Shown here in pieces: positions 2,281-64,000 of a DNA stretch of 64,000 nucleotides. This stretch comes from Neoechinorhynchus agilis. Lineage: Eukaryota > Animalia > Acanthocephala. The first letter of the stretch is position 1; each line of letters starts with the position of its first letter. Location of the stretch: positions 16,284,784 to 16,348,783 of the forward strand of contig CM121341.1 of NCBI GenBank assembly GCA_051530055.1, given 5' to 3'. The notes beneath the pieces were generated by a model, which saw nothing but the letters and a program-made list of their open reading frames with translations, was not told the origin of the DNA and ran no database searches. Position numbers and translations under genes: made by a program.

Positions 2281-2536
2281 TATTATGTAAATTGTACGTT
2301 GGCGAATCATTTACCCGATATTGTCGTTACTCATTTATTTATTTGAGAAATATTTCGCAAGGGGCTGTGCATGCTGTTTATGTTATCTCCATTTTAGATA
2401 GAGACTGAAGAGGCAAGGAAAACCCTGCGAAATATTTCCATAATAAATAAATGAGTAACGACAACATCCGGGGCAGGATTCGCCGACGTACAATTAAATT
2501 CACCCCGAGGACAATGATATATGATATTATGTAAAT
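2281..2536. mobile_element. Palindromic hammerhead-bearing pLTR-like element A with 12-bp TSD
   Basis: TATTATGTAAAT direct repeat at 2281-2292 and 2525-2536; imperfect inverted arms about 2289-2362 and 2419-2495; hammerhead-like motif on + at 2401-2440; same family as 11770-12026. Confidence 0.75.
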
Positions 2537-3475: not shown

Positions 3476-3548
3476 GTTTCCGTGGTGTAGCGGTTATCAC
3501 GTCTGCCTAACACGCAGAAGGTCCCCAGTTCGAGCCTGGGCGGAAACA
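3476..3548 (+). tRNA. trnV-AAC: tRNA-Val (anticodon AAC)
   Basis: 73 nt GTTTCCG...CGGAAACA cloverleaf; anticodon stem TCTGC/GCAGA with loop CTAACAC; T-loop GTTCGAG. Confidence 0.95.
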
Positions 3549-11272: not shown

Positions 11273-11610
<338 letters not shown>

Positions 11611-11769
11611 GCGGACCCGTCGTTTCCCCTCTACTGATCTGGATTTTAAAATAAATTGCGTTTTTGGAAAAAGAACTTTTTAGATTTTCATGGTATTGTG
11701 TACCCTCGCGATGAGATTATAAGGGAATTGGTAGTAGCGGAGAATCCTTATAATAAAATCGATAGCAAT

Positions 11770-12026
11770 GTTATCGAAAGCTTTCGATCATTGTCCTCGG
11801 GGTGAATTTGATTGTGCGTTGGCGAATCCTGCCCCCGGTGCTTTCGTTACTCATTTATATTCGAAATATTTCACAAGGTTTTCCTTGCCTCTTCAGTCGA
11901 TATTGTCAGTAAGTTTTACTCGACTGAAGAGGCAAGGAAAACCTTGTGAAATATTTCGAATATAAATGAGTAACGAAAGCACCGGGGGCAGGATTCGCCA
12001 ACGCACAAGTTATCGAAAGCTTTCGA
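11770..12026. mobile_element. Palindromic double-hammerhead pLTR-like element B with 18-bp TSD
   Basis: Perfect 89-bp inverted arms 11812-11900 and 11920-12008 around a 19-nt spacer; direct repeat GTTATCGAAAGCTTTCGA at 11770-11787 and 12009-12026. Confidence 0.9.
11920..11959 (+). ncRNA. Minimal type I hammerhead ribozyme motif (exact inverted copy at 11861-11900 on the minus strand)
   Basis: TCGA-CTGAAGA-G-GCAAGG-AAAA-CCTTGT-GAAA-TAT-T-TCGA: stem I TCGA/TCGA, 6-bp stem II, loop-less palindromic stem III, predicted cleavage after AUU, one extra core nucleotide. Confidence 0.7.
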
Positions 12027-12091
12027 AATATCAAAAGATATTAAAATATTCGTTGCTTTCATATTTAAATTAAAGTTAGCTATAATTTCAG

Positions 12092-15000
12092 TCATTGCCG
12101 TATGTACATGAGGTCTCTGTGCGCAGAGATGACAAAAGTTATGTCATCCGCGTAACAGGTGATAGAAGCAGCACGAATTTTGAAATTTTTAACGATATAC
12201 TGGGAGGCAAGTAGAAACAGGATCGGGGAAAGTGGTGAACCTTGTGGGACACCCGTGAGCCGGTAATAAATCGATTTCGATGCGTCAATCTCGTAAAAGA
12301 AAGATTTGGTAAATAGAATATTGTGAATTCGGGAGACCAAATTATGAGGAACGCTAAATAAATCCAGTATCTCGATAATAAAAGACAAAGATATCTTGTC
12401 GAACGCCTGAGATAGGTCAACAGCCACTATGGCTTTCAAAGGTAGATTGGAGTTAGAAAAACTAGCGTATATATTAGTTAGAGCAGAGTGTACAAATTTC
12501 CCCTTTTGAAAGCCGTGGCAATTGGCCGATATGCAGCTATGCTTTGTTATGAAGGCTCTCAAGCGATGCGCTATGGCTCGTTCGTAAGTGGTTACAAAGG
12601 GGTTCTGTAGAGAAATTGGGCGGAGATCCTAAGGCTGAGAGACCGACTTTTTCCCATTTTTAATAAGAAAAATACGCCGTACCACATTAATCTCTCTCCA
12701 AGCATAAGGAGAGCAACTCAGCATTAATTCGGCCAAAATGACGATGCAGTCATGCGGAAGTAAAGTAAAGATTTTGGTGCCTGAGCTCAAACTGCGCATA
12801 AAAGACTCGACAGGCAAGGTCAAAGAATTATTGGAAAGGAGCGAGGAAAAGAATAGTTTTAGATCTCTGAGTAAACGAATTGAGCGGGTTTTAAAGATCA
12901 ACTTTGTTTTTGATAAATTGAGAGAGAGGTTCATGCGAGGTAGCATAGTGTTAAGATAGTCTATTGACTGTTCAATTAAAAGTTTTAAGCTGGCGACCCT
13001 ATACGATTTCATCACAAAGGCGATATCATCAGCATAACAGATCAAAGCAGCATTATAAGGAAAATTTTGTACAATATATTGAGAAGCCAGGAGGAATAAA
13101 GAAGGAGAGAGCGGCGATCCCTGTGGGACACCATTAAGAGGGTAAGATAAGGTTTTTCCAGCATCATCGTCGTAATAAAAAGCCTTTGAAAAAAGTGTAT
13201 TATGAATCCTGGCAATGAGATTATGAGGAGCACTGAAAGATTCTAACATCTCGATAATGAAGCTCAAGGAGATTTTGTCAAAGGCCTGAGGCAGGTCCAC
13301 TGCTAGAGTAAATGTCAGCCAGCGCTGAGTGAGTAGATTTACCTTTAAAAAAGCCATGGCAATTACGGGAAATGCAGTTCGGTTCCCTGATAAAAAGATT
13401 TAGTTTATGCGTTTGAGCCCGCTCATAGATGGTGACCAAAGGATTTTGCAGGGAGATCGGCCGAAGGTCTTTGGGAGCCTTAACTAACTTTCTCCCATTT
13501 TTAACCAAGAATATGCGCCTCGAAATGTTGATATCTCTCCAGGCAGAAGGGGAGCACTTCAACATCAGACTCGCTATAAGGAGGACGCAATCCCGAGAAA
13601 GCAGAGAGGTGCATTTCGTCCATGAGGTGCTGTTGGATGAGGACAATTTTGGATATAGGGACAAATTTCGGCAATATGAGATTGATTTAAATCATATCGA
13701 TTACGAATTAGTCTCCTAAAAATGACTGGCGGTGTGATGTTTTTAGAGGAAGAGGAGGCATGAAAATTAAAGATAGACGAGAGTATATGATCCATAGAGG
13801 ATGTTTTCAACCAAGAGGTGAGCTTCGATCTCCAACTGATAAACTTCTTCCTAGAAACCGTATTCCACCACGTCGAGGAGAATGGCTGTAAAGACTTTAG
13901 TATAGCGCGGTCAGATGCCAATTGCTGTCGACATCGGGCAGCCCAATAATGTCTAGAGCGCACTTTGACAAGAAGAGCATCTCCACGAATTTTGGCTTGA
14001 TATAATTGACACCCAATAAATCGAAAAGATCTGCTTTCATAAGGCCTAGAAAAAACCCTTTGTGGCTGGTAGAGAAACAGATAAGCTGTGGTATTGATAA
14101 TACTGTTAATATGACTGAGGGCGTAATTTAGATTGTTGTCTAAAACAGAGCGATGAGAGAGAAGTGAGTAATTAACCGATCTGAACAGAGCGATGTTCAG
14201 AGGAGACAAATGAAGGACTCTCCTAAGTGTATTGTTGGAGCCGATTGACCATATTAAGACGAAGGTTGGGTTATTGACTAAAGATGTGACCTGAGCAGAC
14301 GAAGCTGAAGCCGAGCTTGAGGAGCCTGGATAGAATGACTTGCGGGCCGGAGAATTAGAGGGATTATTACCCTATTTTTGAACCACGCCCAGTATCTCTT
14401 GAACTCTGGGCAACCTTTGAAGAAAGCAGCGTGCGGTCCCTGACAATTGGCGCAATGCCTCTTAAGTGGGTCGGGACAGCAATCTGAGGTGTGTTCGACG
14501 CAAGAGCAGTGACAACATTTGGCATTCGTCTGATTTGTGTAATTTTGGCACCAGTGTCCCCATTGCTGGCATATATTGCAGCGAGGAAAACATAATCATC
14601 TTGCTCACTGAATGATTTCAGTGTGAAGTGGATCGAGAAGCAGTTGAAGGCCCGAGGTCTGCTGGTGCAGAGGTCCTCACGCTGATGTCTCATACCCTCA
14701 ACCGCTGCAATAGATATTGGAAGTCCAGATTTTCTTGATTTGATGAAGTATTTAATTGTGCAGCCGAATGATGATTCGAAAAGATCCCTATCCTCATTGC
14801 ACATGTCCGGTTGGAGTCCATGAACAAGAAATTGGACCTTTTGCGAGGTTGCAGAGACCGTGTAGAGATTATTAGGAAGGTTGGAGTTGGCGAATTCGAC
14901 AAGATTGGACATCCATTCATATTTGCTGACATAAATCCGCATGGTGCCGGCGAAATAAGTTAGTTTATCCACTCGCTTTATGCCATCGTTATTGAGTGTG

Positions 15001-22078: not shown

Positions 22079-22517
22079 AACAGATAATTAAAAAAAGCTT
22101 GCCAGGAGGTATGAAAAGAGTGCACTCATATGTTAGGTTTACTTCATTGTGAAAAAACAACCACCTTTTGGTGTGCAAAATATTGTTCTTCTAAGAAATA
22201 TAATAAAAAGATTCTGGCGAGAAAGAACTAATTACTTCCTTTCGGCAGTTATAGCACCACGGATTTAAATTGACATAAATTTGTTTATGGATGGAATTGT
22301 CCATGTTTTACATGGGGAAAAAATTGAAATAACATATTGAATCTGATATTTCGGCACAATGCAGCATCCGTCATATAAAAACCCTAATTAATTTCCAATA
22401 TATTGTCGGATCATGTCGGAAATACTTGATCAAAAATCGGAAATAAATTAGTAAATTTAAACCCGTGTAGTCAAAATTACCAAAAACATGTTGTCCATAG
22501 TTTATTTTGAAAAGGGC

Positions 22518-22681
22518 GAGATAAAAGCAATTCAATTTTATTTAATATTTCGTCCTTTACGTGAGACTTCTTCAGAATTGTTTCTCGCGTGACATTTAAG
22601 TAACAATCAAACATTAAAAATAATTCTGAGAGGCTCACATAGAGGACGAAATATTAAATAAGATTGAATTACTTTTATCTC
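22518..22681. mobile_element. Palindromic double-hammerhead pLTR-like element D
   Basis: Inverted arms 22518-22579 and 22622-22681; the minus arm reads AATT-CTGAAGA-A-GTCT..AGGAC-GAAA-TAT-T-AAAT; the plus arm is a degenerate copy. Confidence 0.7.
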
Positions 22682-22781
22682 GACCTCATCAAAACAAAAA
22701 ATATGTAAATAACGCGTATACGGAAGAATTTTTCGAAGATGCATAATACGTCAGTCTTCGAAATTCTTTACTGAATGGACG

Positions 22782-32374: not shown

Positions 32375-32603
32375 AATGATTCTTGAAATTTGTTTTGTGC
32401 GGACACCCAGACGTTTTTTATTATGCAAATTTTCGGAGAGCAAAGTCTGCAAGTTTTTTCAATGAAAAAACTTGCAAACAATGACCAAAAGCCTGAAGAG
32501 GGAGACTTTGCTCTCCGAAAATTTGCATAATAAAAAACGTCTGGGTGTCCGCACAAAACAAATCTCGTTTCACCCAACAGTAATAATGAATGATTCTTGA
32601 AAT
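32375..32603. mobile_element. Palindromic hammerhead-bearing pLTR-like element E with 15-bp TSD
   Basis: AATGATTCTTGAAAT at 32375-32389 and 32589-32603; 61-bp inverted arms 32388-32448 and 32503-32563; GC-CTGAAGA-G-GGAGA-ctttgc-TCTCC-GAAA-ATT-T-GC at 32491-32526, then AATAAA. Confidence 0.8.
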
Positions 32604-45338: not shown

Positions 45339-46689
45339 TCAACACAATAATCAAACCGCTAAATTCTGTGTCATGGCTGATCGATACTTTATTAGCAATG
45401 TTGTTAGCTTTTCAACGATCTTAAATTATATTGTTCAGAAATCTTAAGAAAAGCAGGTAACTTTCCATATTACCTACGTAACTAAATAAAAAATTACAAC
45501 GCTTTCACGTAAAATTCTTTGGCACTATAGAGTAGTCGACAAAAACCGAAAGCGATTGAAACGTCTCGTCTTATCGTCAAAGTGAACTATTAGCACATTT
45601 CGAACAAAAAACTGCAAAGAAATTTACATTCGATCGAGTTTTTCCTTCGAGGGGTTCAGTTCATTTTCTCTATACGGCGAGTTTTTGCCCCCCCCCGAGA
45701 ATTATTTGTAAATAAGCAAATTTTCGAAGCCTCTACCTCCTTATCAAGCATCTAAAAATACATGTAGTAGGGGAGCTCATTTGATCCCTGGACGCGGGTC
45801 CATCAATTTCCGAAGTTGATAAAATATGGTGAAGAAAATAAGAACTGAGAAATTCAATTTTATTGTGAATTTTCGGCCGTAGCGTAGGCCTTCTTCAGAC
45901 TATCTAAAATGTATCAGTCGCAAATCCTATGTCCTTTTGGAACGATATCTGGCGGAACGCGTAGGTGGAGTGTGTAATCGCCCTTGTTGTGCATTGAAGT
46001 TCCATATATAAACGAGAATTGGAACTGTAATATTGAAACCTTGGTCAAACGACTCGAAAGGAACGCCAAACAAAACGACCTCGGGTTCAACAGGCAAATA
46101 AGAATACGGCAAGAGGACGACAGGCTACACCGATAAGCACCAGAGACATTCCCTGCTCGTCTACAACCGAAAGCCATGTAACACAGGAGCAATTCGTCAC
46201 AAATTCGTATCCGCCCAATGAATACAATTAAGTGCCTCAAATCAGATATAAAGTTTATACTTCTTACCTAATGCATTTGCGATGTTGTTTGTATGTGGGT
46301 ATGATATTAAATTAAAAAATTAATTTATTTGCGATGAGCTACATGCAATAGAGCAAACGAACACAAATATATCACGGAATTTTCCAATAAAACGGTCCTG
46401 GACAACAATTTGCATTTCAGTACCAAAACAATGTTAACACGCAATTTGGTTATTGCCCACATCGACGAAAAATGAATAATGGAATGGGAATACACAATAC
46501 AAACTTTCCAGCCAACGCAAATGCTCCAATGGTGAACACCTATTATGGAAATTAGACTACAATTTTAACCCCACAAAAAATGACACTCCGAGCAACTGGT
46601 CCAACGGGATGGCTGAGTATCACGAAGGTTCCTGAATTCTCCTGTTCGATCTAAACAGGAGAATTCAGGAGAATTCAGGAACACAAGCG

Positions 46690-46995
46690 ATCGATAAATA
46701 GAAAGAGTGACATGAGTTCTGCAGTGGTCTCACACGCTATGAATACTGGGCATCAGATCGATTTTGATAACATACAAGTGTTATTACGAAGTCACGATCG
46801 ATTCAGTCGTGTGGTCATGGAAGCTGTGTATATCCAGTCGTCATCCATTTTTGATGGAAACAAGCCAGATTACAAATTGAAGCTTCGGATTCCACCCGAT
46901 AAGATCAACGTGTGATAGTTTTTGGCTTTCCCTACCTCTCTTTTTAGAATTCGCTGAAGATCCTAGTTTGGATCGAAATATTCAATTAATAAATT
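46690..46995 (+). mobile_element. Penelope-like element 3' relic: GIY-YIG C-terminal half plus pLTR
   Basis: SAVVSHAMNTGHQIDFDNIQVL....RFSRVVMEAVYI, then CTGAA-GATCC..GGATC-GAAATATTC and AATAAA at 46954-46993. Confidence 0.8.
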
Positions 46996-47059
46996 AATTA
47001 ATTCTTACTTCAATTCCCATACCTCAAACATATGGATTTTATTTTCAACACTCTTAATA

Positions 47060-47415
47060 ATTGTTTTTGTGACGTTTCTCACCCAGACATTTATTTATTT
47101 GATCGAATTTTCGAGACTCTCCGGTCTCCTCTTCAGGTGTTGTCAACATCTAAAACACAAGCGCTCGCTCATCATCAATTTACGTTTTAACTAAGGACCC
47201 GGGGTCCGTCATGTCCGTTAGCAGAGGCGCAATTTTCCGTGCTGCTACCCTGGGGGAGCTTAGGCCATGAGCAGATATCTGTGGTTGATAACTTTAGGGT
47301 CACATTCCCTTTGTTACCTTCCATACGTTTTTGTCGCTCGGCCTGTTCTATCATCATGGACTCCATTATGAGCCTCCGTTATAAATGTCTGGGTGAGAAA
47401 CGTCACAAAAACAAT
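47060..47415. mobile_element. Head-to-head pLTR-like element G with a hammerhead on the minus arm
   Basis: Perfect 35-bp inverted repeat 47060-47094 / 47381-47415; minus strand 47139->47102 reads CTGAAGA-G-GAGAC-cggaga-GTCTC-GAAA-ATT-C; tail resembles element E. Confidence 0.65.
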
Positions 47416-47589
47416 CATACTATATACCCAAAACAACAACTTGACCTTATACCCTTAATAATATTCTCAATGACTTTTCAGCGAAAATACTACAAATGGT
47501 GGACTTGAGGATAAGCTCAGCTATTCAAAACCTCGAACGACGCCTAGAGAAACACTTCAAAACCTGACCAATTCTATCTCATTAGTCTG

Positions 47590-57487: not shown

Positions 57488-57563
57488 TCTATACCCGGTA
57501 ACTGATGATGAACCCGACGAGGTTCCAAACGTCTTTAATAAATACTCAATTACCGGGTGTAGA
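57488..57563. mobile_element. Short pLTR-like element H with a mutated hammerhead
   Basis: AA-CTGATGA-T-GAACC-cgacga-GGTTC-CAAA-CGT-C-TT then AATAAA; 14-bp inverted ends TCTATACCCGGTAA / TTACCGGGTGTAGA. Confidence 0.55.
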
Positions 57564-63690: not shown

Positions 63691-64000
63691 AAGTATTATT
63701 TAGCTCTTCACTCGGTAAATAATTTTTTATTAAAAAAAATTTCGAATCTCGACAGTTATTAAGCGTCTTTTAATAACTAACGAACTGACGGTGAATCCGA
63801 CGAGATTCGAAACTTCTTTAATGCAAAAAATTATCTACCGAGTGACGACCTAAATAATACTTCTAATAATATAACCCGAAATCTCACATATCGATATTTT
63901 AAAATATGTCATGCCCGGGAGTATGCTGATCACAATTCTAGTCATTTTTATATCACCAAAGAGTTTAATTCAAAATCAAATTTAACCATCAGGAGGTACT

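Follow-up and report, generated by a model that had tools for sequence, protein, structure and literature searches.

We find that element B, at positions 11770-12026 of the 64,000-nucleotide stretch of DNA analysed here (the window), is a known kind of Penelope-like element (PLE) insertion scar in a new and young instance, and neither a new class of element nor a new ribozyme. It very probably arose in one retrotransposition event, carried out in trans by a PLE reverse transcriptase/GIY-YIG endonuclease, from a small multi-copy family that is non-coding and descends from a PLE end (pseudo-LTR). With its exact target-site duplication (TSD) and empty site, its tail on one side only and its identical arms, element B offers a clean, young example of Penelope integration, a process that is poorly understood. 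Its parts, in order along the window, are listed here.

11770-11787, no strand assigned: left copy of the TSD, 18 bp; exact direct repeat with 12009-12026, and seen in the empty-site joint
11788-11811, minus strand: one-sided 24-nt tail, forming the 3' end of the long copy; homologous to the tail of element A at 2496-2524
11812-11918, minus strand: body of the long copy, comprising the left arm and the spacer (its own 5' region), as indicated by read depth and fold
11865-11896, minus strand: 32-nt minimal hammerhead motif of the long copy, recognised by descriptor match and by stem II covariation across families
11920-12008, plus strand: inverted, 5'-truncated 89-nt copy with no tail; 100% complementary to 11812-11900, and ending where tail-less family copies end
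11924-11955, plus strand: 32-nt minimal hammerhead motif of the short copy, with predicted cleavage after 11955
12009-12026, no strand assigned: right copy of the TSD, 18 bp; exact repeat, and seen in the empty-site joint

Sequence comparison confirms the layout first described for this locus in all of its parts. The inverted arms (11812-11900 and 11920-12008) are each 89 nt long and 100% complementary, a spacer of 19 nt (11901-11919) lies between them, an exact 18-nt direct repeat brackets the whole, and the left side alone has a 24-nt extension, which separates the left repeat from the left arm. Element B is a 131-nt minus-strand copy (11918 to 11788, tail included) abutting an 89-nt, 5'-truncated and tail-less plus-strand copy. 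One base, 11919, belongs to neither copy, and the joint at this position shows no microhomology. The spacer is family sequence of the minus-strand copy because read depth at 11907/11908 is ~14x that of the flank, and the 24-nt extension is element sequence, not target, because the homology between elements A and B runs through it. In the predicted minimum-energy fold of the long copy, the spacer pairs downstream of the cleavage site and extends helix I, helix II forms, and both core strands are open; the modelled fold supports the division of element B into a long copy and a short copy. Moreover, an open frame of 22 codons, 14 of them within the arm and 8 in the tail, runs from an ATG at 11966; 5 of the 7 differences between elements A and B over this frame are non-synonymous. 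By analogy with rotifer Penelopes, the ORF of the parent element probably began with these codons, the likeness being suggestive and not proof. The rotifer element Pen2a, with its 9-bp TSD, 31-bp tail and inverted pseudo-LTR, begins its ORF within the pseudo-LTR, which includes the first 12 codons, a number that rises to 22 when the tail is counted (PMC3846280).

The insertion itself can be read directly from sequence data placed on positions 11620-12500, namely one whole-genome Illumina run, one DNA contig set and two RNA-labelled contig sets. A joint from 11769 to 12009, with 18 ambiguous letters, is present in 16 reads (15 start points) and in one DNA contig, and a variant joint from 11772 to 12012 is carried by 8 more reads. 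The first of these joints is the exact empty site with a single 18-mer, and demonstrates both the insertion and its TSD. Filled and empty forms have similar depth in the DNA contigs (~130 versus ~160). The flanks of the empty-site reads differ from the assembly by several percent, and most Illumina reads from the flanks carry variants that are absent from the assembly; the empty form may be an allele (an insertion polymorphism) or instead a paralogous copy of the target. The insertion looks young, because the arms are identical to each other and so are the TSD copies, and these identities, together with the empty site in the reads, support the original prediction of a recent, non-coding insertion with a true TSD.

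Several features of the target region were also observed. Element B has a 330-bp (TTA)n tract (11280-11609) on one side and a LINE-type reverse transcriptase (RT) ORF (12092-13357, minus strand) on the other, and may sit in the 3' UTR of the LINE; the only structures matched by this ORF are those of R2-type LINEs. The tract is ~480 nt downstream (minus strand) of the LINE-type RT ORF pair and looks like the 3' tail of the LINE; the two ORFs of the pair (12092-12562 and 12629-13357) share 67% DNA identity. The target site of element B contains a perfect 14-nt palindrome (TCGAAAGCTTTCGA), present at 11774-11787 and 12013-12026, and the other TSDs in the window are not palindromic. Illumina reads mostly differ from the assembly at 11685, 11765 and 12052-12065, with 51 of 54 reads lacking one nucleotide at 11685, and the cause could be another haplotype, another population or consensus error.

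Element B belongs to a multi-copy family, because its arms are ~70x deeper in the Illumina data than the left flank. The 3' ends of the family fall into three classes. At 11812, exactly the end of the tail-less right arm of element B, 757 reads leave the element; another 260 leave at 11808; and 2037 pass through 11788 and share ~9 more letters before their AT-rich flanks diverge, so that the full tail of the family is ~33 nt long (24 nt in element B). On the other side, thousands of family reads leave element B at 11898, 11903 or 11905 and pass into 5' sequence typical of the family, resembling what precedes the hammerhead in element A. Opposite-strand joints at 11906 and 11917 correspond to other head-to-head pairs with different junctions, and joints linking 11918 to 11819 across 18 letters correspond to head-to-tail copies with a period of ~118 nt, which make up a small minority of the family reads. 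In the whole-genome reads, the family occurs solo, in tandem and in differently joined inverted copies.

Four related insertions in the window were examined for the same architecture.

2281-2536, plus strand: element A, of the same family as element B and older; long plus-strand copy with a 29-nt tail at 2496-2524; TSD of 9-12 bp
22501-22698, minus strand: element D, an older inverted pair, 87-92% identical; complete motif on the minus strand only (22575-22544)
32375-32603, plus strand: element E, of a different family with the same build; complete motif at 32493-32524; tail of ~25 nt; TSD of 15 bp
47053-47462, minus strand: element F, with a long minus-strand copy and a motif at 47136-47105; TSD of 9 bp

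According to the original prediction, the architecture of element B recurs with different sequences at 2.3, 18.8, 22.5, 32.4, 47.1 and 57.5 kb. Inverted pairs are indeed present in elements A, D, E and F, but a complete hammerhead on both strands is found in element B only, and there is one hammerhead each at 2.3 kb (with one stem II mismatch), 22.5, 32.4 and 47.1 kb. The 2.3-kb element, moreover, is not of different sequence: it belongs to the family of element B, to which it is 85-87% identical, tail included. The inverted partner in element A (2290-2362) is 73 nt long and is cut inside stem II, that in element E is 64 nt long and lacks the CUGAAGA core, and that in element F (47381-47415) is 35 nt long and carries a 38-nt tail, which in this case is on the short copy. 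Because partner lengths vary among elements A, B, E and F (35, 64, 73 and 89 nt in the window), the point at which the inverted partner is truncated is arbitrary, and element B is the case in which the partner is long enough to retain the whole 32-nt motif. The one-sided tails are 24-38 nt long, with a TTCACCC...AATGA pattern shared by those of elements A, B and E, and the TSDs are 9, 12, 15 and 18 bp; no TSD is recognisable for element D. Arms are identical in elements B, E and F, which are young, and 85-92% identical in elements A and D, which are old. Of the core, the repeat at 18.8 kb retains just the 3' portion (GAAA-UAUC), followed by downstream sequence, and the site at 57.5 kb (57490-57560) has the full layout but with G12 replaced by C. 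At 63.7 kb (63785-63873), a position absent from the original list, lies a decayed element related to that at 57.5 kb, in which A9 is replaced by G and 15.2/16.2 is unpaired. These last two relics share the helix II loop CGACGA, and both are dead hammerheads of a further family. With ~ten relics in 64 kb, this compact worm genome is densely seeded with PLE ends. The window also contains a tRNA gene at 3476-3548 (61 bits in Rfam), 1 kb from element A, which is the sole match at Rfam gathering thresholds.

These observations bear on what it is that moves. A perfect 89-nt inverted repeat within a direct repeat resembles a MITE, and the whole palindrome might be taken as the mobile unit, either as a MITE or foldback element moved by a DNA transposase or as a palindromic RNA copied as such. 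We regard this as highly improbable. A MITE or DDE origin needs a TSD of fixed length, but the TSDs of the siblings vary from 9 to 18 bp; the ends of element B are asymmetric, with a tail on one side only; and the inverted partners range from 35 to 89 nt and mostly lack the core. The thousands of family reads described above leave element B at three points instead of entering the palindrome, the family also occurs in tandem, and the window revealed no transposase having ends of this kind. The original view that such units mimic MITEs is supported, a DDE/MITE origin being unlikely given the variable TSDs and the one-sided tail. The accompanying view of Penelope-mobilised head-to-head pairs is right as regards their derivation from PLEs and their non-coding nature, but the palindrome is not the unit that moves, given that the inner junctions differ, the spacer belongs to one arm and family members are also found solo or in tandem.

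Each arm of element B reads, outward from the centre, TCGA, CTGAAGA, G, GCAAGG, AAAA, CCTTGT, GAAA, TATT and TCGA (11920-11959 on the plus strand), with the core motif at 11924-11955 on the plus strand and 11896-11865 on the minus strand. Both strands carry the CUGANGA and GAAA cores in type I order, and standard hammerhead numbering places the predicted scissile bond after 11955 on the plus strand. To count such motifs we used a strict descriptor built from published features (PMC4209133): CUGANGA, one extra base, a helix II of at least 4 bp, GAAA, a complementary 15.2/16.2 pair, U16.1 and H17. The descriptor finds 6 sites in the window, compared to 0.005 expected (the mean of 200 dinucleotide-preserving shuffles), and all six are exactly 32 nt long from C3 to H17. 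We also aligned 8 motifs, including that of element A and two from another locus. Stem II is paired in 97.5% of cells in this alignment, a value that is partly circular because 7 of the 8 motifs were chosen by a descriptor that requires pairing, and there are 14 double-sided changes, with none of 500 shuffles scoring as high; when the stem II partner columns are slid as a control, pairing falls to 22-47%. The real evidence for the motif is the variety of pair types together with the chance expectation. Covariation of stem II across copies, which had been named as a test of the ribozyme assignment, is thus present.

The motif is a Penelope-type minimal hammerhead, as first proposed, with nearly all of the published features. 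Helix III is loop-less with a palindromic 15.2/16.2 pair followed by U16.1 and H17 (AUAU-U in element B; AU or UA at 15.2/16.2 in 8 of 8 motifs), and the extra base after A9 is G in elements B, A, E and F and A in elements G and D and in locus L001. The exception is the conserved G10.1-C11.1 pair, which is G-U in element B and G-C in the 7 other aligned motifs, and on the basis of this G-U pair element B may be a weakened copy of the hammerhead. The exact 32-nt core of the B family gave no match in the metagenome scan. In addition, four hammerheads from different families (at 2405, 45898, 46954 and 47136) have a TTTTAGA(T) motif 5-15 nt upstream, as do most B-family reads. Immediately past the cleavage site, the majority of B-family copies have UCUAAAA, to which this motif is complementary; the motif may be a distal part of helix I.

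Rfam reports no hammerhead in the window at gathering thresholds, nor in 11700-12100 at E<=10, where the only matches are to spurious microRNA-precursor models and are caused by the long hairpin of the palindrome. Given this result, and the fact that chimeric long reads can create palindromes, an assembly foldback error or an accidental resemblance to a hammerhead was considered for element B. Such an explanation is barely credible. About 67 Illumina reads cross 11919, at about flank depth, and because most of these agree with the assembly, the palindrome is not an assembly artefact; chance is opposed by the excess of motifs over expectation and by the covariation of stem II, and the Rfam hammerhead models evidently miss the loop-less type. 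Such units imitate both MITEs and microRNA hairpins and go undetected by the Rfam models, which makes their recognition useful for repeat annotation.

As regards expression, contigs from two RNA-labelled runs include exact arm sequence, and one contig of 906 nt runs from the LINE into the right arm, the left flank being uncovered. Some transcription is therefore likely. A transcript spanning the whole unit is predicted to form a hairpin of -173 kcal/mol that buries the motif, and this hairpin would be expected to dominate in such a transcript. The two sense motifs of element B lie on opposite strands, so that no single transcript holds both, and for this reason element B cannot form a hammerhead dimer in cis. 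Published work has shown that minimal hammerheads do not cleave as single motifs and cleave weakly as dimers (PMC4209133), and that no RNA-seq read ends at the hammerhead site of the PLE studied in vitro in 2024 (PMC11167929). The proposal that the unit switches between self-cleavage and small-RNA production is speculation.

The head-to-tail read joints, which imply a unit of ~118 nt, and the arm sequence in the RNA-labelled contigs are also what might be expected if the family were a free-standing animal retrozyme, consisting of tandem hammerhead repeats that spread via self-cleaved circular RNA, with element B as an integration by-product and not a Penelope end. We consider this unlikely. 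Tandem joints are only a small minority of the family reads, element B is inverted and not a direct tandem, and a tail, a TSD of variable length and an inverted partner are all hallmarks of PLEs. Moreover, animal retrozymes have themselves been argued to be non-autonomous PLE derivatives (2026 preprint 10.64898/2026.07.22.740005), and if this is correct, the retrozyme explanation is largely a sub-case of derivation from a PLE end.

Derivation of such hammerhead elements from PLEs can be examined at two further sites in the window.

45867-46000, minus strand: element G, with a complete motif at 45898-45867, preceded by an ORF end homologous to that of element H
46712-46982, plus strand: element H, with a C-terminal GIY-YIG endonuclease remnant ORF at 46712-46915 and a degenerate hammerhead from 46954

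The ORF of element H, 67 codons long, stops 38 nt before the degenerate hammerhead. An exhaustive HMMER search with this ORF gives 14 matches, and it is the C-terminal end of a GIY-YIG domain because the best matches carry Pfam GIY-YIG adjoining or overlapping the matched stretch. The top match lies on a 16-Mb chromosome record (GCA_051530055.1) that contains tandem GIY-YIG remnants and 32-nt hammerheads close to that of element G, every 360-410 bp. Tandem units of 360-410 bp are observed at L001:3292-8996 (CM121342.1), each with a 32-nt minimal hammerhead (helix II GGCC/GGCC), and GIY-YIG ORF remnants are present in the array. Elements G (minus) and H (plus) face away from each other across ~1 kb, both keeping the last codons of a PLE ORF (...DY.L.LR.PPD...), and may have arisen either in a single old head-to-head insertion or in two independent ones. 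Pfam searches of 20 window ORFs found no PLE reverse transcriptase in the window, and the search with an RT piece at 61.5 kb returned nothing useful. Among the loci examined (the window and L001), no intact PLE was found, and none with the terminus of element B itself.

Taken together, we favour an origin of element B in which the PLE endonuclease would nick both strands, 18 bp apart, and so give rise to the TSD. Synthesis of cDNA would start from a distal site on one side, leaving the tail, and from a proximal site on the other, leaving none, after which the two cDNA products would be joined at 11919 without microhomology. Both arms would have been copied from the same template or master, as suggested by their identity, and end-to-end joining or template jumping would be preferred to snap-back priming. 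The hammerheads would be passengers of the pseudo-LTR, and motifs with a loop-less helix III would need a second sense copy, which the inverted layout does not supply in cis. The order of these integration events is inferred and not observed. In vitro, purified PLE protein cleaves and extends both target strands, and initiates reverse transcription at two internal positions, one at either end of the tail (2024, PMC11167929). The pattern of element B agrees with this behaviour of the protein, and its anatomy is what the in-vitro biochemistry predicts, namely staggered nicks that produce the TSD, a single tail, and 3' ends that face outward on both sides (PMC11167929).

Two other routes were considered and rejected. 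Snap-back self-priming at TCGA is inconsistent with the finding that 11917-11919 cannot pair with 11901-11903, and with reads showing that the long copy ends at 11918. A hammerhead-cleaved RNA as template would give a copy that starts after 11955, not at the 5' edge of the motif, and the partners in elements A, E and F show arbitrary truncation.

A further, tentative possibility, to which we give less than even weight, is that the family of element B forms a self-sufficient template ~118-131 nt long, a "mini-retrozyme" comprising nothing but the hammerhead, the first Penelope ORF codons and the tail, which is still mobilised in this worm. If so, priming on both nicked strands from a single template by a PLE complex, so far seen only in vitro, would naturally leave head-to-head insertions of the B type, which have identical arms, a one-sided tail and a joint free of microhomology, and the cis-requirements of PLE retrotransposition would be bounded at ~130 nt or less.

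The arrangement of element B was originally thought to be possibly undescribed, but it matches the published structure of PLE insertions (PMC8557442, PMC3846280, PMC11167929). PLE insertions are heavily 5'-truncated, with an adjacent inverted 5'-truncated copy and a tail of 30-40 bp that is often at one end only (Craig et al. 2021, PMC8557442), and rotifer Penelopes have an adjacent inverted pseudo-LTR, TSDs of 8-10 bp and a 31-bp tail on one inverted pseudo-LTR (Arkhipova et al. 2013, PMC3846280). Element B shares with these insertions (PMC3846280, PMC8557442) the head-to-head, inverted 5'-truncated copy, the optional tail at one end, the short TSD of variable length, an ORF start in the terminal repeat that is open through the tail, and perhaps insertion into another retroelement. 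It differs from PLE insertions in having no ORF body, both copies being only 89-131 nt long, from rotifer Penelopes in the length of its TSD (18 bp versus 8-10), and from PLE tails in that its own is 24 nt long rather than 30-40. The motif resembles the minimal hammerhead of metazoan PLEs (PMC4209133) in its CUGANGA and GAAA cores, the extra base between 9 and 10.1, the short helix I, the lack of a helix III loop with palindromic 15.2/16.2, and the existence of many families whose helix II shows compensatory changes. This helix measures 4-6 bp here, however, compared to 7-8 bp reported in Schistosoma, the distance from C3 to H17 is fixed at 32 nt in all copies here, and element B has G-U at 10.1/11.1. 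Like the animal non-LTR retrozymes (Cervera and de la Pena 2020; 10.64898/2026.07.22.740005), the family consists of small, non-coding hammerhead repeats related to PLE pseudo-LTRs, with some copies in tandem according to the reads, but element B is an inverted pair, and the implied unit of ~118 nt would be unusually short. Finally, there is a parallel with LINE-1 twin priming, in which two cDNAs from two nicked target strands likewise give an inverted, 5'-truncated structure within one TSD. Element B differs in the class of enzyme (GIY-YIG plus PLE RT), and in that both of its parts keep the 3' end of the element rather than one being an inverted internal segment.
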